DNA of 64,000 nucleotides from Oikopleura dioica (Eukaryota > Animalia > Chordata), in assembly GCA_907165135.1 (NCBI GenBank), contig OU015568.1:372001-436000 (forward strand), read 5' to 3'. Below, one piece after another: positions 954 to 47,164 of this stretch. Under the pieces are notes generated by a model, which was given only the letters and a program-made list of their open reading frames with translations, was not told the origin of the DNA and did not search any database. Numbering within the stretch: the stretch's first letter is position 1; every line of letters begins with the position of its first letter. A program made the translations under genes and the position numbers.

Positions 954-3607
954 ATGCCCGTCTTGTCAAATTCTAGGGCTAGTTCGTATAGAAAGGCTTT
1001 TGGGCCGACGAGGGGGCAGTTTGGGAGTACGCAGAGTATCAACAAGATTCCCAATGAAGGTGCAGAGAAGACGGACTTTTATACTTCCGATGATATTCAA
1101 GGTAAAATCTTAAAGCGCTAGAATTTGTCTCATTAGCTATTTTAGCCATGTACGCCGCAGCGCAGAATAAATTTGGATCCCCAAACGAGCGACTTGGATC
1201 ACTGAACTCTCGATTCGCGAGCTACATTGAAAAAGTCCGATTCTTGGAAGAGCAGAATAGAATTCTAGAGCTGAAAATCAAAGCTGCTCAGAAACGGAAG
1301 TCTGAAATTGAAAATCACCATGATACGGCGAGGGAGATCGATGCCTTGAGAATCGCAATTGATCAAGAAACGATGGAGAAGGTCAAGATGCAGGTTGAGA
1401 GGGATAATTTGAAGGGAGATGCTGTTGAACTTAGGAATCGGGATAAAAATGATCTAGATTGAAAACCATAATGCAGCCAGATTTGAGATATATATATACT
1501 TTTCTGGAGACAACCTCTCTGAGGATTATATAATATAATAATCAACTTCTATTTAATATTAAATTCTGACTACGAACCTTAACTTAAATTTTAGCAATGA
1601 ATGCTTAGATCAAACTTATCTTTAAAAGTCATAAAATTGAGGACGAACATACTTTACGAAATGATCTTACAGATGAGCTTCAAAAGATGAGAAAAGATGT
1701 TGATGACGCAACGATGGTTCGGGTTGATCTTGGTAAGAATATCTTATTCAAAATACTATTTAAACACCACAAATATATTTCCAGGCTAGATAATCAGTAT
1801 TTTAATGCTTCAATACAGTATCGAATACTCAAAATTAACATGAAAAGTCCCATCAATTAAGACTGGAGACTAGCCTTTGAGATAACTTAATTCTTCTAAA
1901 TATGATCATCAATTTAGAACGCAAAATCGAAACTGTTCAAGAAGAACTTGACTACACCCGCCGAGTCCGAGCTGAAGAGATAGAGGATCTCAAGGTAATT
2001 TTATCTATCGGCATTATGTTTAAAAGATTCTTAGAATCAAATCTCTGAGCAAGGAATTTCCGTGGAAGTTGACGGTGTCACACCAGATATGACGCTTATT
2101 CTTGCCGAGATTCGAAAAGAATACGACGTCATTGCTGCGAAAAACAGAGATGAAGCAGAAGAATGGTACAAGAGAAAATGCTCGGATTTGGAGGAAAAAT
2201 CAAGATCGAATCAGGAAGAACTCGAGAAGGTCAACGCCGAAATCGCGGAGTACAGGAATGGTCGAAAAACCGGACTTCGGTATAAAATCAGGGTGCGCGT
2301 CAGTTAAGGCGTTTTTGCCATTTGCGTCTTTTAAGGCATTGCGTCTTTTAAGGCACTTGCGTCAGTTAAGGCGCTGAAAAATGACTAGTGGAATTCTGAT
2401 ATCAAGTAGGGTCTGCTAAATTACCTCGATTGTAACTATCCTTGAAATTCTCCTTATTTCAATCTCAAATTTAACAGCGTATTCAAAATATTTAAATTTC
2501 AGATAATTTCAAATACATTGAAAACGATCTGAGAAAATTAACTAAAATTTTAGTGTCGAACCTTTATTTTTACAAATAATAAATTTATTCTATCAAGAAA
2601 AACTTCAAATTCAATCATAAACCAGCGGTTCAGCTTATAACTGAATATAAAAAGATTTTCTTGAGAAAATATTAACTTTGGCACTTACCCTAGGAATTGG
2701 TAAAGTAATATTTTATCAAGAAATCTAGCAGACCCTAGTTGATATCAGAATTCCACTAGTCATTTTTCAGCGCCTTAACTGACGCAAGTGCCTTAAAAGA
2801 CGCAATGCCTTAAAAGACGCAAATGGCAAAAACGCCTTAACTGACGCGCACCCATAAAATCATAGCGTCCTTTTAAACCATTGAAAAGAAAGCAAGTCAC
2901 GCGGCTGGAAATGGAGCTTGAGAGTCTCAGAGGAACAAACGAATACCTCGAGCGAAATCTTCAGGTTTATTGACTGATAACGCATTTTTCTTATTTTCCC
3001 AAGGACATGGAAAAACGCTCAGAAGTCGAGGTCCAATCTTATCAAGCGCGAGTTTCAAAGCTTCAAGCTGAGCTGGATCGTGCTGTTAGTGACATGAAGG
3101 TATGACCCCGTGTTGTTCGTGATTCTAGAGATTTTTAGCGACATTTGACGGAGTACAAGAACCTTATGAGCGTGAAACTTTCGCTGGAGAAGGAAATCGA
3201 TACATACAGAAGCCTTTTGGAGGGCGAAGAAGGGCGGATTTCAACAAATGGTTCTTCAGGTACCAATTTCCCTTCGAAAAGATGCTCTATTGAATCTAGA
3301 TTCTGACCGAGACGATTCAAGCGAAGATGAGCGCCCACCGGTCCAAATCATCAAAACCCCCTCCAAGCCAATTTCCGCCCCAGCGATTCCTCCCCGAATC
3401 CCCGATCGACCAAAACCAACTCATACAGCGACAAAAGTCGTTGCCATCAAAGCTCCAGCGATTCCAAAGCGAGTGGAGCCCTCGATTATCATCAAGAAAA
3501 CTGCGCCACCAAGTGACTCAAGCTCTTCTGACGACTCTTCTGACTCTTCTTCTGACGATTCTGATGACTCATCGGAAGATTCTTCTGATGATTCTGTTTC
3601 TGAGTGA
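954..3607 (+). CDS. Cytoplasmic intermediate filament protein (type III/IV-like) with Pro- and Ser/Asp-rich tail
   Basis: Head motif SSYRKAFG, coil 1[20 protein letters not shown], rod end [19 protein letters not shown]. Multi-exon; two introns need GA donors (1435-1628, 2256-2888). Confidence 0.93.
2291..2853. mobile_element. Non-autonomous MITE, Mutator-like (about 130-bp TIRs, 9-bp TSD)
   Basis: GGGTGCGCGTCAGTTAAGGCG... at 2291 is mirrored at 2853. Exact direct repeat ATAAAATCA at 2282-2290 and 2854-2862. Lies in an intron of the filament gene. Confidence 0.88.
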
Positions 3608-15400: not shown

Positions 15401-18392
15401 ACCTATCAGATTATAGCATTTTACCTGTAGATTACAATGATATTGGTTTCCAATTGGAGTCTTTTGGAACATTTTTTTAAAACGCAAAAAAGTGCAAGCT
15501 CGAGCCTAAAATTGAATTTTAAGGGATGAAATAGGGATTTTCGGGGGTTGTCATAATGAAAAAGAATGATCCTCAGCATCAAAGGAAGCCATTCCATCAA
15601 TTATTTTTCACATTTAAGAAGGTTTAAATTCACGGAATTTTCCCACGGTGGACCCCCTATGTATAGTACTTTACCATGATATAGAATCATGCCAGGTGTT
15701 AACTCAATAGCATTATTAGGAAAAAAGTTGATTATTTTGTAAGTTTGCCCTGATTCATTGTTGCACTGGACGAACTTGCCCTTTCTCTTGCATTCCTTGA
15801 GGGCGCTGTTGTAGTCGTATCCGTCCTGGACCTAGAGAAATGATTTAATAATTTGAATCTGAGTTCCTTCTAAAATACAATCGGTAAATTCATATTGAAA
15901 AGCCGCAAAGCGCCTTTGCCAAAATAGATTCTAAGGAAAGATCGAAGTTTCGATTTTCTATTAAGTTTGCATTTTACAACTCTAAGGGTTAGGGCCTAAC
16001 CCTAACCTGAGGAGTCTCTTGGTTTCAACTAAAACTTACGTCACAGATAAGGCAGGATCCAGGATCATCTCGAATAAGCGAATTCTTCCCTCGATTTTCC
16101 TCAGTAGCGTTTCCAAGAGCAACACCGAACTCGTCGTAGTAGTAGGAGAATGAGTCATCGACGGTGTTCAAGGAGTCGACTTCCTGGGCGAGAGCGGCTC
16201 CGGCGAAGAAAAAGTAAAAAGCTTCATTTTTCAAAATCGATGACAAGATTTTTGGGGAAAATCTGTAGTTGTTCCTTCTCGCTAGTATTTAGCGAGTGAT
16301 GATTTTTGCGAACTTGGCGCTCGGTTTTATAGTCCAGGGTTCATCGGGCCGGTTTGTGATAACGCTCATATCGCAATGCCGGTTTCAAGGGTCGTGATTG
16401 ACGTAGCGGATTAGAAAGTTTTTTTCGTATTAATGATGCATGTTTTGGCGAATAGTGGAGATAGGTGGAGATAGAATAAGTGAAGAAAGGAGACTCTGAG
16501 CGACCCTGGCCCTGAGAGTCGCTCAATGTGGAGCGCCAAAACTTGGAGTTCGTCTTCTCGATTCTGTGATTGGCTGAATCCCTGCATTTCCGCAGAAATT
16601 TTCGAGATTCTTCTGAAGCGCCCAGCACGCGCGAAGGAAAATTTTTAGACTTCCCCGCGAGTGATATGCGCGGAAAACGGGGATGGGGACCCGGGGGCTT
16701 TCTCCACATAGAACTCAACTCTATGGTAACATTTACCTCGACCTAGCCCCTAACCCTGGTCCTAGATAATCGACTTCAGAATGGCCAAATTTTGAAGCAG
16801 CTTTCTCCTCAAATAAATATTTATATGTTACAGTTTATAACTTATAAACTATCATCAACCGCCATAGTTTGCGTGGATTACAAGAGCCTTACTGTCTATC
16901 CTTACAGGACTATTCAAGTGCTCCTGCTTTCATTCAGCGGCTTTGAGATTAATAAACATTCAGCAAGCTTGAGCTTCAAGGAGGGAAACTCTGGCTAATT
17001 AAATCACATATTTTTTGACAAGAGAATTCTAACGCTCATATTCTAGCATCGCTGTCTTTGCTCCCGACAAAGATTCAGCCTTCGTTACCGACGCGATCAG
17101 TTCAATGCGCAAATGCTGGCCCCAGATTCGCGATAAAGTCACGTTTCATCTCGTCTACCCAGGGGTCTAAATTCGCAGTGCGAATTCGCTTTATTGCGAA
17201 GCGATGCGAAGCGAAGCGAATTCGTAAAGTTAAGTATAGTTACTGATATTTTGTAATTTTCTGCCCCAAAATAGGTTTTTGAAATCATCTTCGCTTTTGA
17301 GTGGCTGATAGCTATAGATTCTTGCCAGAGAATGCGTTTCAATTCAAGCGAAAAAATCTTCGCTTTTTTTCGCAATTTTTAATGATATTTCGCTTCGCTC
17401 TCGCTTCGAACATGGGCGAAAAATTCGCTTCGCTTTCGCTTCGCAGAAAATTTGAAAAAAAGGTTCGCTTTCGCTTCGCTTTCGCACTAGGATTTCGGCT
17501 GATATTTTGACCCCTGGTCTACCCGATCGGCCATACATCGGACGTTTCTTCCTCCGCCGGTGGTTTAGAATTCAATGACTGCAACGAGCTAGTCGATATC
17601 ATCTCCAAATTCGGTGGCGACGACGGAGGCAACTACAAAGGCGACATTCCCTATCCTCACAATGTCTTGAGAAACGTTGCGATAAAAGCTTCCGCGACGA
17701 AGTTTACATTTCTCATCGACATTGATGTCCTGCCTAATGAGTTTATCAGGGAGAGATTTAACAAAATGGCGGTTAGTAAAGGATATTACGAGGAGGATTT
17801 TAATGAAAACGTGGTTTTTGTTGTGCCATGTTTTGAGATGCAAAAAGGAAAGTTCCCACTACAAATGCCCAATTTTTAAACGGGGAAGTAGAGAGAACTC
17901 AAAAAAGGCTACGCTCGATCAAAGAACAAAAAACACCTTCTCGAAGATTTCGGAAAAGGCCTCATCCGACCATTCCACAACGAGTCCTGCTGGTGGTGCC
18001 ATTCGCCCGAGGAGCACCCCCACTGGTTGGATATCCCTCTCCGAAAAAGCGACCAGTCGAAAATCGTCTTCAACGCGACATGGAACAAGAATTGGGAGCC
18101 ATTTTACATTGGCTCAAAAGATGTGCCACTTTTTGATGAGAGATTCAAACAATATGGCTTTGATCGACAGCAGCAGATTTGCGAGCTATTCACTGCGGGG
18201 TATACTTTTTCCGTGCTTGACGATGCCTTTTTGGTTCACGATGTGAGTCCCTTGTCGAATGATAAAGAGTACTGTCAATTCTAGGGCTGGAAATTTCCTC
18301 ACGCTGCCGCTCGATTGGAAGAGACCTACAGAAATTGGGTTTTGTTCAATTTTCACTACCAGGAATGGCTTCACTACTTTTCAAGTAGATAA
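9424..18392 (+). CDS. B4GAT1: GT49 family beta-1,4-glucuronyltransferase-like (B4GAT1/LARGE C-terminal type); 7.2-kb intron 9868-17046; one exon interrupted by a MITE
   Basis: Type II TM anchor; DVTLASQCS..LLERWSGPMSIAVF, FHLVYP, YPHNVLRNVA, LIDIDVLP, VFVVPCFE, IRPFH..C..CH, WEPFY, PLFDERFKQYGFDR.QQICEL..AGY.F.VL..AFLVH. Confidence 0.88.
10871..13086. repeat. Tandem array 1: 56-bp unit, about 40 copies
   Basis: Unit GTCAAGCCCCTTAATTTTAATCAGCCAGGGACGGGGCTGAGACGGCCCGAAGGGCC; variation is almost only C3 vs C4. Confidence 0.98.
13447..15659. mobile_element. hAT-like non-autonomous element B carrying satellite array 2
   Basis: TIR TAGGGGGTCCACCGTGGGAAAAT / ATTTTCCCACGGTGGACCCCCTA; exact 8-bp TSD TGTATAGT at 13439-13446 and 15660-15667. 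Confidence 0.92.
13917..15139. repeat. Tandem array 2: 56-bp unit, about 22 copies
   Basis: Unit GTCAAGCCCATTTTAAATAAAAAGCCAGGGACGGGGCTGAGACGGCCCGAAGGGCC; same GC part as array 1, different AT core. Confidence 0.98.
17160..17516. mobile_element. hAT-like MITE inserted in a B4GAT1-like coding exon
   Basis: Termini CAGGGGTC / GACCCCTG; GTCTACC(C) duplicated on both sides; interior rich in TTCGCT repeats. Removal restores HLVYPIGHTSDV. Confidence 0.87.
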
Positions 18393-19140
18393 AGTAAGGT
18401 TAGCTTAGGGTTAAGATTCGAGCAGTGTTTGAAAAAAGCCTTAGAATCGAATGGTCGGACGAGCGCGGGCGCGAAGGGTCCGATTGTTTGGAAGGGCGGA
18501 TGAGAGCGGGCACGTAGAGGCCAGATTTTGGGATGGGCGGATGTGCGCGGGCACCCTCCCGCGCTCGCCCGCTCACCCTCCCGGGGCGCTAAATTCTACT
18601 CAAAGAAAACCAACCGGAAGACGCGTAGAATCAGCCAAAACCGACCAAAACAGAGTTGGAAATTAGTAGGGTAGTACGTGTAGAAATGGAGTAAATTTCT
18701 TCATCGGGTGGTAGTAATGGTAGTATGTTGTAGGATTCTCCCTTTTCGTATTATCTATACCGTATGTTGCATACGGTATGACCGTTGAAATAAATTGCAC
18801 CACCATAAACTTTATGGCATAAAGCACGTCTATGCGAAATTGCCTTTTCAATTGAACTTCAAATTCTGCCGAAGCCGATCCGCGGCTTTTCATCAGAGAT
18901 CTTCTTCATCAGGTTTTATACAAAGATTGCAGAGCTACTACCAAAATGAAATGAAACTAATATTCTCTAGAAAATTATTTTTCAAGCTGTTTTTCTAGCA
19001 GATCTCAATAAAGAATAAGAGAGAGTAGGTATTATAGCCGCTATAATTTATAGCCTACATTGTAGGCCCTACAAAATTATCTTTTGTCAATTATTTGAAA
19101 TGTTATTTGATCTTCTATGCTGCGCTTTGATTTATAAAAT

Positions 19141-20806
19141 TTATGTACAGTAAAATTCATCGACAGGTAAAACGATCGGACGATGAAATTCGCTCCAGTG
19201 ATTGTTGACGACTTCTGCCGAGGCAATTTGTTCTCCATCCCATTCCAGTTTTTCCACAGCATAACTTAGTTTAATAATTTTTGTTGATTCATAAAAATAA
19301 CATACGGTTCATTTCTGCCGCTAACAAGATAAATCGTATTTCCGATTCGCGCTGCGGAGGAATACAAATGCTAAAGTTAAATTTTAGGATGGCTGAATTT
19401 GATAAAATTCTTACATATTCGTTGAGCTGGCCAACAACAGTCCATTCTAAGTCGCGTAGTAAATAAACATCTTTTAAGCTGTGAGATTCCTCATTTTCTT
19501 CGTATTTCCCTCCGAGGACAAGAAAGCCGTCGTAAACTCCAATGCAGGAATGCATGAAAATTGCTCTTCAAATCATAATTTAAAGATATTTAAACCAATT
19601 TACTTTGGAAAATCTGGTAATTCTGACCAAGAATCGCCATTGAATTCCTCCACTTTCTTGTAGGCGTCAGAAACCCAGGAGCCGACTGCGACTGCGTGAT
19701 CGTGGTAGAGCGCCAAACAAGAATTTCTATGATAATATTTCGTCGCCGGTTTTATTGAAACAGCGCTGCCGTTGAATTCTTCGCAGTTTCTCCATTCTTT
19801 TTCGTCAAAGCAAATCAATGCTAAAGATATATTATTTTAAATTATATTGCTCTTAGTCTACCTGATTGTTGATCTGCTGCCGTTACAACAGCAGCATTCC
19901 AGTAATAGTGATTGTTGAGTTTTACATCTAACTCCTCAATTTCACAGTCGTTAATCATCGCGATCTAATTTTCATGGAATGAAGACTTCATAAACTAACA
20001 CTTACATGAAAATCATTTTCATTTACTCCACCAAAGATGTAGACTTTTCCGCGAATCAAAGCAGAGTACGAAAGGTAAAGGTAGTGAGAAGTGTAAGAAG
20101 GCATTTTGATTGTCAGAGGACTCTTGCTTCCATCTGATTTGAGAACATAGCTCAGAAACACTGTTTGAGAGTCCAATCCAGAAAGAACCATCAATGAGCG
20201 ACCGCTTTTGAGTTCTTCGATCTCTTTTTGAAGCCGGAGAGTATCTATGTTCTTTATTAAATTGCACTGGGTGAAAGGCGGCCAGGTTCTGCAGCAGAAC
20301 CTGATTCCGTAAGTTCAAATTCTGGTTCTGCAGTCAGGATTTTTTTTTACTCCACGTCTTTTGTCTTGAAGTTTCTTCAAGATAATTACAAGTCAGAACG
20401 TGGAGGCTCCAGCCACATTTATGCTAGCCTTGTTGAACGTACTGATTCTGAGGTAAAATTCAAATAATATGAATTAAAAACTCTGACTTTAGAACCCGGT
20501 TCTAACACAATTACCGGAAGCTTTAGTAATGGTAGAATCGTCCTGCGAATCGGAATGAGCATTCATTTTCGAAAGAATCAAAGGCGTGATGATTCCGTGG
20601 ATTGTCAGAAGAGCGACCGCAATCTTCAAAATCAGCGAAAGACCTTTTAGTTTATTCAGGCACGATTTTTTATCCTTTTTCTCTTTTTTCTCCTTCTTTT
20701 CTGCTGGGCTGTTCACTTGATTACTGACGTTGACTACGACGTTCAACGGAACAGTTGAAGGGTCTTCTGAACTCTCTTGCTTTTTAAAACTTAATTTTCC
20801 CTTCAT
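19141..20806 (-). CDS. Membrane-anchored kelch-like beta-propeller protein, multi-exon; exon 1/2 junction uncertain
   Basis: Lys-rich N-terminus plus TM segment (LILKIAVALLTIHGIITPLIL), short coil, then SALIRGKVYIFGG, LICF..C..FNG, LALYHDHAVAVGS, W..LPDFP, FLVLGG..VYLL..WTVVGQL; ends RPIVLPVDEFYCT*. Confidence 0.78.
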
Positions 20807-21231
20807 TTCAAGAGTTTTTACGATTTATCTTTTGCTGCTGACCGTTTTGCATGAGTCGGCATTGAAGAGGTAAATATATGATTGCAGAGTAAATATCATT
20901 TCCAGAATATGAGTAATTTCTCGAACTTTTCGTAAAAGACTTTTCAGACCCTGACTCAGATTTTATTCAAAGATTGCTGAACCGGATGTAAGGCGGCAGC
21001 GGTACAAAATTTGTACCGGTGGTTTTTAATGAAAAGAAGGTCTTTGATCATGATGGTAGTAAACTGTTAACTTTTTTTTAGTAATTGTACGTAGTAGCAG
21101 TTTTTTGGAGCCGCGGTAGTAATCTTGAAGCGGTGTTTCTGATGGTAGTAATGGCAGTATGTAGTAGCAACATGTTACTACATTTCCAACTCTGGACCAA
21201 AAAGCCCACCACCCACCGACCAACAAAGAAA

Positions 21232-21392
21232 ACGGACTTAATCTACACAGAAAAGGGACTTATTTTACATAGAATAATGACTTATTTTACATAGTCTATG
21301 TAACATAGAAAATAAACGATTTCCTATTTTTCTGTGTAAAATGAGTCCCAATTTTGTGTAAGTCCTTGTTCTGTGTAAAATGAGTCCGTTTT
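21232..21392. repeat. Small foldback element
   Basis: ACGGACTTAATCTACACAGAA and GGACTTATTTTACATAG on the left are inverted relative to CTGTGTAAAATGAGTCC (twice) on the right. Confidence 0.6.
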
Positions 21393-22041
21393 ACTTGATA
21401 ATACCCTGTCCAATCACATGCACTCATGGGCGAGGGGCGAGCATGGCAGGGGAGGGCGGGCGAGCGGGGGAGCACGAGCGGTACGTGCGCGTGCGAGCAG
21501 TATGAGGCTTGATTTTTTGATGGGCGGATGAGTGCGGGCAAAATTTGTCAAAATTTTAGCTGGTCGGATGGACGAGCGCGCCCGCCCGCGCCCCGCTCGC
21601 CCGCTCGCAGCCCGCGCACTTTTTTTTTCAAACACTGGGTTCGAGAAAGAAGCCTTGAAAAAAGCAAACCTTGATGAAAATATACGATGATCCAAAAAGC
21701 TGCAACCCAGTCGAAACCTGGTTTCCTCGCTGGCCAAAGCAAAAAGAAGGGGTTAGAAATCGAAAGATTCCTTTCAAGAAAAATTTTTTCAAAGACGAAG
21801 GCTACATTCCTCCATCAAAACGATTTGGAAATAAAAAACCGCTTTTCTGATTACTATTAAAATGATCTTACGTGAATTTTCAATTTCTATTCTTTTACTT
21901 ATAAACTCATTTATATTTTGTTCTATTATCCTGCCAAAATTTATTTGTAACACTCTATGTAATAAACTCTTGTACAATATTCGATGACGCGAAAAGTGCA
22001 TTTATGAAAAAATATAATAAGAACCCGATAAAAACCCGAGA

Positions 22042-43409: not shown

Positions 43410-46400
43410 GTATGCAGCTATAAGGTTAAGTTTTATGAAAAAAGCTTTGACAGGATGACTTCATCAGATGATTTTATTGCTTCTCCAAAGATAATTTTGC
43501 AAAACCTTCAAAAGAAAATAAATCATTTTCTTTCTCGATTCGATGAACTAACCTTTCAATAACTCTTCATTAATATTATTGTCTGTGAGGCCTGTTTTCA
43601 CCCTGAAGGTGACCTCCATTTTCGTCTCAGGATTACTAACCACCGCCTCCAAAAGGTCTTCAATATTCGATGCTACGATTAGGATATCGTCTACTTCGAT
43701 GATTCTATTCTGCATCATTTCTTGCGCCACAAGTGCAGGTGTATCTTTTGAAGGGATAATTCACAAGCTTTATCGAACAGTAATATATTCATCGAACCCC
43801 TTTCCTGTGCCAATAACAAACGGAAAAGAGATATCTTGAAGATGGCCACTCTGATTTTGTCGAATTCTCAAGCTCAACTTGACTTCCGTTCCCTTCATTG
43901 CCTCCATTTTAAGCTTCAACTCGTCAACTTCGCGCTTAGCTTCCGCACTTCTTGGACTGTTGTGATTTTCAGTTTTTTCTTGAGGGTCTGCCTCGTCGTC
44001 GGAAAACTCCCAGCCTCCATCGGGCAGCTTTCTCAGTCGTCCAGAGCTGCCAGGAACTCGACGGGGCGTGATGCCTTTGGCGGGAATCGGCGTGTAGGAA
44101 AGAACGGAACGCATCACCTGCTTGTACTTGTCGTCTTCTTTTGCTTTTTGAAGAATTTGTCTGAATATATTTTAAAGTATTTATTCGGCAGTATGCAAGA
44201 AACTGTGACGTTTTTTGAGCATGAAACAAAACCAAAACATTAAAAAGATTCATTTTAAATATTCCATCATTTTATATATTATATATAAATTTTAAAATTT
44301 GCTAATCTCATCCCGTTTTATAAATATAAAATTTTTTTCAATTGAAAAAATCAGGTCGGGCGAGAATTGGGGCGGAACGGTAGATAAATCCAGCCGATAA
44401 AAACTGCCTTACCTTTCAGGAGCTCTTTTGCAGTAGGTCTCAGTTTCGGATCCTTTTGAAGACATCTTTCGATCATTTTGCGGAATTCTCGCGAATATTT
44501 CTTGTATTTCGTCTTGTCGAGAGTAGGTTCGGGATTATTGACGGTCAGCATGATGACTTTCATCGGCGGGAACTTAATTTCAGGTGAAATTAATGGTTCG
44601 AGTCGTCTCTTACCTTGGCATACGGAGCAAAACCAGTGGCAAGTTCGAAGGCAACAATTCCAAAAGACCAAATATCAGCCTATAAATCAAATATTTCCCT
44701 TCAAATGATCAAGAATTCAAACCTTCATGTCGTAGCCTTTTTCTTGTTCCATTACCTCCGGCGCCATCCAGCAAGGAGTTCCGACGAAAGTGCCCTTTTT
44801 CGCGTCGCCAAACGGATCACCAGATATACTCATTATCGCCGACACACCAAAATCGGCAAGAGCGATGGCACCATCTCCTCCAATAAGGATGTTGCCAGCT
44901 TTCAAGTCGCGGTGAATTTGCCCGTTTGAGTGGAGGTAATCAAGTCCCGATAGAGTTGCTAGAACTGGTGTTGAAGCAAAGAAGTTCTGTGTAAGACTGT
45001 ACCTTTGAGAGCAGTGGCAAGTTCGACCTCTTCAAAGAGACCATCTTCGAATTCAGGGCGGTTTATTCTTTGCTAAAAGAAAAGATAAAAAAATCGAACC
45101 AGGGTTCAAAACTTGATTGCAATCTCGTTGATCCATTTTTATCAACCGAAACTATCATTATTTGTATCTTATCAAGATTCAAACCAGAGTTTGAAATGCT
45201 CGCAAATGCTCGCGAGCGAAAAGAGCGAGAGCAAAATTTATCATTGCTCTGAGAGCAGGGGAGCGGGAGCATGAAAATGAGTTGGCTCGAGAGCCAAAAG
45301 AGCACGAGCCCAAATTTGAACCCGCTCGCGAGCGCAGAGAGCACGAGCGCATATGTCAGAAATGCTTGGGAGCTAGACGAGCGGGAGCGGCTGCTCTCGT
45401 GCTCGCCATGGAATTGACTCACGAGCGGCTCGCGAGCAAAATTGAAAGAATATTTTTTCGCATAATTATTCACTTTCATAAATAAATTTCTTTGAGGATC
45501 TATTTTTGTTGTTTTCGGTTTTATGTAAGCTTCATTAGGTCCGTAATATCGGCAGCAGAATGCGAAAAGCCGAGAGTAAACAGATAAAACATGCCCACCG
45601 CGAGGTGCTAACTCCTGTGACAGGGACTCATATGGAATTAGTCACGGGGCCGCCGAATCATTTAAGGGTAAAACATCAAATCGGAGCGGCGCGTCACACT
45701 GGATCAGCGCCCCGCCGTGACCTATTTTTCAAAGGGCCGTAACTTATGAACGGATAAACTTTTTTCAAAACTTTCTTTTGGCTTAAATTGATTGAAGCAT
45801 TCTCTCTTTGCATACTGAAAATGAGCAAAATCGTCCACTAAAAAGTAGGAGAAACTGACATGAGTTGGTTAAAATCGCCCGCCTATCTCTCACGCTGCGC
45901 TCCTGCGAAAGTAGCGGCGCGGTTCAGCGCTCATTTCAAAGGATCATATAAAATTCTAGAGACCTTCAAAATTTGATCTGAGAAAACCAAATTATAGGTC
46001 TAACGGAGCTCTACTGACTGGTTTTTGTTTCAAAAAAATCGGATAAAAATTGTGAGAGGAGATAGATTTTTTCCAACTCATGTCAGTTTCCCCTACTTTT
46101 TAGTGGACGATTTCGCTCATTTTCAGTATGCTAAGAGAGAAGGCTTCAATCAATTTAAGCCAAAAGAAAGTTTTGAAAAAAGTTTATCCGTTCATAAGTT
46201 ACGGCCTTTTGAAAAGTAGGTCACAGCGGGCCGCTGATCCAGCGTGGCGCGCCGGGCTGATTTGATGTTTTACCCTTAAGGCCCTTGAAAGCTGCTCGCG
46301 AGTCAGTTTTTTCAGCTCGAGAGCCGATCGAGCGAGAGCACAATTCGACCAGTGCTCGAGAGCCAAGAGAGCGAGAGCGCAAAATGAAATGCGCTCGCGA

Positions 46401-47164
46401 GCGCAAAGAGCACGAGCTCTGAAATAAATGTGCTCGGGAGCACAAAGAGCATCATGCTCGTGCTCGCTCGCTCTCAAGTGAGCCGCTCGCGAGTCACGAA
46501 AATTTCAAACTCTGATTCAAACGCTGCATAAAAATGTAAGGTTGAAGTTCAGAAGAATAAAGTAATAAAATGATTCGATTCCTACATGTTCAAATGCATC
46601 CTTTAAAGTTTCTTAAATGAAGACTTAAATCTTGCAACAGTCTCTTTCATAATGTGCCCAAGTATTGAAAAATGAAAAGTGTTACAAGTTATTACTAATA
46701 TCATAACATGAATAAACTTACTTTTATGACATCAAACATTGATCCACCAGAATGCAGGGCCATTATGATCCAAAGCTCATGTTTGACGACAAAACTCGTA
46801 TGAAACTCCACTGAAAATCCTTATAAACCCCCCCTCTTTACTCAAAAAACTGACCGATATGTTCGTGTCTACACTTCATCATCAACCCAACTTCCGTCGA
46901 AATCGACTTGAGTGAGCTGGAAAACTCTTCGAATTGAATCCGTTTCACCGCCACCCTCCTTTGTTTCCCAGTTTTCGGGCAAGTAAAGCAGGCGACTTGA
47001 ACATGAGCAGTGGCTCCCTGACCGAGGACCTCGAGCATTTCATAGTCGCCCTTGTTCGTGGTGAACTCGATTTCTTCTTGCCCCGATTCCATTTTCAATA
47101 GCTTCAGGTGTTTTTCATATTCTAAAAGCTCCAAAATCAGTTCTTTGATCATCATCATCGTCAT
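43410..47164 (-). CDS. OXSR1: STE20-family kinase OSR1/SPAK; last exon uncertain
   Basis: [52 protein letters not shown], signature [10 protein letters not shown]....[12 protein letters not shown] domain [11 protein letters not shown]. Confidence 0.92.
45185..46514. mobile_element. hAT-like element in a kinase intron, GCTCGCGAGC subterminal repeats
   Basis: TIR CAGAGTTTGAAAT / ATTTCAAACTCTG; exact 8-bp TSD ATTCAAAC at 45177-45184 and 46515-46522. Confidence 0.92.
45666..46275. mobile_element. Kolobok-like MITE nested in the hAT element
   Basis: TTAA|GGGTAAAACATCAAATC ... GATTTGATGTTTTACCC|TTAA with about 220-bp imperfect inverted arms. Confidence 0.88.

Follow-up and report, generated by a model that had tools for sequence, protein, structure and literature searches.

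DNA transposons that have taken up host-gene sequence are known from animals: a survey of 100 genomes recovered 370 Pack-TIR elements, 208 of them of hAT type, with a median cargo of a 224-bp gene fragment, and ascribed the single-copy cases, which are mostly hAT, to transposition-independent gap filling (Tan et al., 2021, Nat Commun; PMC8277862). The main text of that survey does not name Oikopleura (PMC8277862). Here we describe a composite element of this type in a window of 64,000 nucleotides from the chordate Oikopleura dioica (assembly GCA_907165135.1, contig OU015568.1, positions 372,001 to 436,000 of the forward strand; C1:372001-436000, PAR), in which a hAT-type element (A), with a second hAT-type miniature element (B) nested within it, frames a complete spliced gene for a kelch-repeat protein, PAR.g8500. 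The element has terminal inverted repeats (TIRs) and a target site duplication (TSD) without a transposase, and its interior derives from a host gene with relatives elsewhere, the nearest of which lies at a synonymous divergence (dS) of 0.40. It is a rare whole-gene case of a known type of gene-capturing element, a single-copy Pack-TIR or Pack-hAT that probably acquired its payload by break repair with template switching inside the hairpin-prone nested element.

Like the animal Pack-TIRs, the Oikopleura element is non-autonomous, single-copy and of hAT type, with TIRs, a TSD, a host-gene interior, no transposase and a proposed origin by gap filling; unlike them, it carries a complete seven-exon gene with upstream sequence, intact and constrained, and the cargo sits in a second, nested element, with its pieces rearranged and no surviving parent of matching age (PMC8277862). 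Ssk-FB4 of Drosophila melanogaster, for which there is evidence of function, also holds nearly a whole coding gene and its 5' upstream region in a TIR element, but it is multicopy with distinct TSDs, proven to transpose, young and of foldback/TcMariner type, whereas the Oikopleura element is single-copy, old and hAT-type (PMC8277862). The Pack-hAT/Pack-TYPE elements of maize and rice share with it the hAT ends, the 8-bp TSD and a host-derived interior, but these plant elements usually carry exon fragments (Gisby and Catoni, 2022; PMC8903248). Turmoil-1 of C. elegans is likewise an animal DNA transposon with host coding sequence, but this consists of fragments within long terminal repeats, with no whole spliced gene in the interior (PMC2572040). 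A further likeness is to the filler DNA of internally deleted P elements, cited in the survey, which keep their termini around a foreign interior that differs between copies (PMC8277862). Fillers in P and Ac/Ds-type elements differ from the Oikopleura cargo in that they normally measure tens to hundreds of bp and include no working gene. Internally deleted elements of the Ac/Ds type likewise contain filler DNA, and a gap-repair model is applied to such fillers.

Element A is a non-autonomous hAT-type element situated just past the stop codon of a GT49/B4GAT1-like gene. Its 15-bp TIR, CAGTGTTTGAAAAAA, is exact at 18423-18437 (forward) and 21623-21637 (reverse), and both arms contain GC-rich subterminal repeat blocks (GC 0.6), in agreement with the first-pass annotation of this window. 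The bordering octamers agree at seven of eight positions, a match of at least 7/8 having a chance probability of ~4e-4. A search of the whole 64.3-Mb, 19-contig assembly recovered partial copies of family A and five further full ones, each with a perfect 8-bp TSD of its own: CTTTAAAC (640 bp), TTCTTCAG (998 bp), ATCTCTCG (1207 bp), GATGAAAA (1233 bp) and GTCGAACC (4510 bp, L049). Because these TSDs are perfect and all differ, the A ends and the duplication can be taken as real and of hAT type, and not as products of chance. The arms of the window copy lie at a divergence (K) of 0.03-0.06 from the family consensus and 0.04-0.10 from the other copies. TIRs of hAT elements start with YARNG (for example CAGAG or CAGTG), as in Ac, hobo, Hermes and Tol2, and this start is found in the TIRs of both A and B; the 8-bp TSD typical of hAT elements is perfect in the five A copies, 7/8 in the window copy of A, and perfect in the B nest and three free B copies. 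The framework of the element is as follows.

18415-18422, no strand: left TSD of A (GATTCGAG), 7/8 match with 21638-21645
18423-18650, forward strand: 5' arm of A, with the TIR at 18423-18437 and GC-rich subterminal repeats; 91-94% identity to five other copies
18651-18741, forward strand: 5' arm of B, matching B positions 1-100 of free copies L056-L060
18742-21057, no strand: payload of 2316 bp replacing B positions ~101-323 (~220 bp); homology to B breaks at both borders
21058-21194, forward strand: 3' arm of B (B positions ~324-510), ending in an exact 19-nt TIR at 21176-21194
21195-21637, forward strand: 3' arm of A, with the TIR at 21623-21637; 87-95% identity to six other copies
21638-21645, no strand: right TSD of A (GGTTCGAG), 7/8 match with 18415-18422

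The inner element, of family B, occupies 18651-21194, and its TIR and TSD pair (18651 / 21194, TSD GACCAAAA) was absent from the first account of the element. The family TIR is CAGAGTTGGAAAT(G)TAGTAGGGTAGTA, and the window copy is flanked by perfect copies of its TSD at 18643-18650 and 21195-21202. Free B copies measure 394-510 bp, and three of them have perfect TSDs of their own (AGTGTTAC, TCCGCGCC and GTTTAGAC). The description of the unit as a Pack-type hAT with a whole gene thus needs amending: one TIR/TSD pair does bracket the gene, but the gene lies within the nested B and not directly in A.

Taken together, the arms make up a full family A element, in which the two sides of the ancestral B nest are present and their GACCAAAA copies agree. 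It is accordingly highly improbable that a resident gene lies by coincidence between two A elements truncated independently, or that misassembly produced the arrangement; although the TSD is 7/8 and not 8/8, and the assembly is Nanopore-based (PMC8008620), the low chance probability of the octamer match also speaks against it, as does the presence of the same gene model in the public annotation.

When the A copies were aligned, their common sequence ran from position 1 to ~228-254 and from ~2706 to 3215 of the window element. With the exception of L049, all other A copies have remnants of the B ends beside GACCAAAA on whichever side is kept, which indicates that B was already nested in A in the ancestor of the sampled short A copies. 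The interiors of the short copies (640, 998, 1207 and 1233 bp) differ at one place, consistent with the proposed replacement of the interior. Only 12 bp of B are left in the 640-bp copy; copy L054 has ~265 bp of foreign sequence at the B position, and copy L053 has pieces of B together with ~350 bp of foreign sequence. In copy L052, a 512-bp palindromic, high-copy miniature element sits exactly where B was (L052 2816-3327; C4:2983315-2983826); its arms measure ~150 bp, and it recurs dozens of times in the genome. A free B copy folds into a strong single-strand hairpin (z -8.1), a stability that fits with B as a fragile spot, and B looks like a hot spot whose interior differs in every sampled A copy.

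No B is visible in the 4510-bp copy (L049 1878-6387; C3:1543877-1548386, on a Y-specific contig). Apart from one 245-bp match and A-type 22-bp repeats, the 4 kb of its interior have no counterpart elsewhere in the genome; they contain several open reading frames of 90-163 aa. We considered this copy as a candidate autonomous element and found no support for this, as eight open reading frames gave no hAT domain or Pfam match and the 163-aa frame gave no homolog. A related fragment, with the 3' end, is found at C4:5670896-5671223. Separately, five segments resembling the A 3' subterminal region at 74-93% identity extend over ~47 kb of chr2 (C5:876386-923200; L016-L020 and L047), the last three spaced ~6 kb apart, which suggests a tandemly duplicated block with an A-related fragment.

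Within the payload, the following features were recognized.

18957-19024, forward strand: X_left, resembling the promoter/5' untranslated region of a gene here called N; 81% to L050 4581-4647, score 70 against a shuffle maximum of 26
19141-20806, reverse strand: kelch-repeat type II membrane protein gene PAR.g8500, 396 aa, seven exons, ATG at 20806 and stop at 19141
Exons of PAR.g8500, reverse strand: 20806-20515, 20244-20006, 19964-19862, 19820-19604, 19565-19415, 19370-19306 and 19264-19141
20282-20503, no strand: miniature element of ~220 bp in intron 1, not in the chr2 paralog; inverted end matches
20807-20975, reverse strand: upstream region copied along with the gene, ~75% identity to the chr2.g5538 upstream region
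21019-21053, forward strand: X_right, a piece of gene N exon 1 (codons VVFNEKKVFD), abutting the B 3' arm; 91% to L050 4685-4719

The sequence from the stop codon of the kelch gene to ~170 bp 5' of its ATG (19137-20975) aligns at 80-83% with the chr2 paralog chr2.g5538 (L050 5022-6697), and the homology begins exactly at the stop codon. Since the introns align as well, the gene was duplicated at the DNA level and did not arise by retrocopying. At the chr2 locus, gene N (L050 4649-4913; C5:5830648-5830912) has two exons encoding a ~75-aa secreted protein, is convergent to chr2.g5538 and ends ~100 bp from its stop codon. The chr2 counterparts of X_left and X_right lie only 37 bp apart and correspond to the promoter and part of exon 1 of N, whereas in the window they stand on opposite sides of the kelch gene, in the order X_left, gene, X_right. 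Both matches reach significance in the genome-wide search and in comparison with shuffled sequence (for X_right, a local alignment score of 55 against a shuffle maximum of 26, and a tblastn match as well). Because the N pieces are split around the gene, the payload is a patchwork in which the parts of a locus resembling that of chr2 g5538 have been rearranged. An origin of the split from a tandem array or a circular intermediate was rejected, as the observed order would need two extra deletions. The left 395 bp of the payload, and the rest of it outside the chr2-matching parts, are unique in the genome.

A repeat search of the element found no TIR, TSD, inverted repeats or direct repeats at the payload borders, and at 18742 and 21057 we saw neither the 5' TC nor the 3' CTRR-hairpin ends of a Helitron. 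That B positions 101-323 were replaced and not merely interrupted, with no TIR or TSD at the borders, we count in favor of gap filling. We also considered that the payload might be a third mobile element, a Helitron or other gene-carrying transposon, inserted into B. Nesting is common in this region, and L052 has its miniature element at the very same spot, but borders lacking all such ends, the loss of ~220 bp of B and the single-copy status of both the left 395 bp and the gene-bearing unit make this very improbable. Conversion from a free, gene-bearing B was also tried and rejected: the B arms match the B remnants in other A copies just as closely as the A arms match their counterparts, and there is no sign of a conversion tract.

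The gene itself is intact. An exon-by-exon model has an open frame with GT-AG borders at every intron and agrees in full with the database entry for PAR.g8500 (P0025, 396 aa), bearing out the earlier description of a complete, intron-containing kelch-like gene inside the ends. The full-length protein has a membrane anchor at its N-terminus and matches Kelch_4 at 31.6 bits (cut-off 21.6) and Kelch_6 at 26.8 bits (cut-off 25.3); as Pfam scans of single exons gave kelch matches only below threshold, the family assignment comes from full-length P0025. Exons were searched singly and the full-length sequences used later are database records; codon counts were taken per exon and then summed, and the DNA alignments of one paralog (C5b) used its genomic BLAST segments set end to end. 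Intron 1 is 270 bp long against ~56 bp in L050, and the miniature element within it has 70-73% matches at C3:638074, C5:16009993, C3:512034 and elsewhere.

Between PAR.g8500 and chr2.g5538, dS is 0.40, the nonsynonymous divergence (dN) 0.16 and dN/dS 0.41; a three-point estimate for the branch of PAR.g8500 alone gives dS 0.23, dN 0.11 and dN/dS ~0.47. The intact frame and a dN/dS of ~0.4-0.5 indicate that the gene has been kept by selection. Its introns diverge by 0.24-0.28 from those of two chr2 paralogs, against 0.16 between those two, and a tree of 12 paralogs places it beside the chr2 pair and a copy at PAR 4.06 Mb, on a branch of 0.17. Since even the nearest extant paralog is only ~80% identical, no extant gene is a recent donor. 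Outside the assembly, a HMMER search with exon 2, which covered 1.84 billion representatives, and a word search with P0004 returned nothing beyond proteins of Okinawan O. dioica, those of OKI2018_I69 among them, and a handful of short fragments from metagenomes, so that the kelch gene family appears, from these searches, to be lineage-restricted.

The gene-bearing unit is present once in 64.3 Mb, and several copies with different TSDs, as expected from mobilization with cargo, were not found. DNA homology that includes introns links PAR.g8500 to chr2.g5538 (80-83%) and 10 further paralogs. None of these 11 loci has A or B arms within ~1.5 kb, contrary to the earlier suggestion that paralogs might be flanked by the same TIRs, and no flanking inverted repeats were found at two dispersed paralogs. 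Most of the family is tandem, with at least 7 copies at chr1 13.89-13.99 Mb and 2 at chr2 5.83 Mb. Given paralogs without A or B ends and a single gene-bearing copy, capture by these ends does not account for the dispersal of the family, as the first-pass annotation had proposed it might. A second copy of the left flank, representing another haplotype or an empty site, was not found in the assembly, and an exact-protein look-up of P0025 in public assemblies gave no match.

The ends of A and B share the terminal motif CAGWGTTKGAAA (also written CAGWGTTKGAAAWW). It has 196 sites in the genome against 13 for a reversed control (~15-fold), many of them pairing +/- at spacings of 300-900 bp, which suggests an extensive set of hAT miniature elements related to one another; of the predicted repeats in this genome, 44% are unclassified (PMC8008620). 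Another non-autonomous hAT-type element in the window (45185-46514, 1330 bp, TIR CAGAGTTTGAAAT, perfect 8-bp TSD ATTCAAAC) also has this motif, in line with the earlier remark that its termini resemble those of A, yet it gave no match in the searches with the A and B arms. The genome contains nine matches to the hAT dimerization domain (PF05699), and none of the nine adjoins A, B or shared-motif ends among the sites listed (~half of the 196 motif sites). In the window element a transposase is absent; its sole sizeable coding content is the kelch gene. Elsewhere in the window, a miniature element of ~220 bp at 17300-17520, in the region of the neighboring glycosyltransferase-like gene, has at least 25 copies at 86-95% identity, distributed over all large contigs.

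Several of these observations bear on whether capture took place elsewhere and was followed by transposition of the entire 3.2-kb element, with the gene in it, to the present site. A single 7/8 TSD brackets a unit with two perfect 15-bp TIRs and complete arms, the sequences most closely related to the payload lie on chr2 and not nearby, the excess of terminal-motif sites shows that such elements have been mobile, and the gene is older than the divergence of the arms. We nevertheless regard this course of events as unlikely, as there is only one gene-bearing copy, no paralog is flanked by A or B ends, and no autonomous partner was found, with none of the nine dimerization-domain matches beside TIR sites among those listed. 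Dating was tried as a means of telling it from copying on site and was set aside: both need capture after the split from L053, and the dates favor neither. We likewise doubt that a constrained whole gene moved between chromosomes as composite hAT cargo, with subsequent loss of the donor copy; if it did, this would be transposon-mediated translocation of a single gene, in an animal noted for having the most scrambled gene order.

Under the break-repair account that we favor, an ancestral non-autonomous hAT element A already held the nested miniature element B. In the lineage of the window copy, a break in the DNA, or synthesis that stalled, within the hairpin-prone B would then have been repaired by copying a foreign template, through gap filling and template switching; ~220 bp of the B interior were thereby swapped for 2.3 kb of fragments from a locus resembling that of chr2 g5538. 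The pieces comprise the whole kelch gene with its introns, ~170 bp of promoter and two fragments of the neighboring gene N, and the copied gene stayed functional. The nesting, the exchanged interior, the patchwork make-up, the integrity and constraint of the gene and its presence as a single copy are demonstrated here; the mechanism of repair is deduced from them. As to timing, we lean slightly towards copying at the present site, after insertion of the element, and consider copying before a last transposition the clearly less probable order; the likelihood that the gene entered an element already resident at the site is no lower than that of its having travelled with the element, and such later copying is how single-copy Pack-TIRs of animals usually arise (PMC8277862).

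Several points weigh against break repair from such a template. There is no donor of matching age, the gene showing a dS of 0.40 and an intron K of 0.24-0.28 against 0.03-0.06 for the A arms. Copy L053 retains B interior that the window copy has lost, so capture should post-date the split between these two copies and be younger than the divergence of the gene from any extant paralog; this mismatch of ages implies either a lost donor paralog, sister to the chr2 locus, or unequal rates. Gap fillers usually come from nearby, whereas the donor-like locus is on chr2 and the window on PAR, and the 64-kb window holds no further kelch-family sequence that could have been a near donor. In addition, the divergence is too great for junction microhomology to be judged.

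Gene-capturing DNA transposons of animals nearly always carry short fragments; this one carries a whole spliced gene with its promoter. PAR.g8500 is a rare transposon-framed duplicate that is still a working gene (dN/dS ~0.4-0.5, own-branch dS ~0.2). If B is a hairpin-prone hot spot, it offers a testable tie between DNA secondary structure and sequence capture. Gene order in O. dioica differs greatly between cryptic lineages. Should the unit prove to lie at different sites in different populations, it would provide a concrete mechanism for the relocation of single genes in this species.

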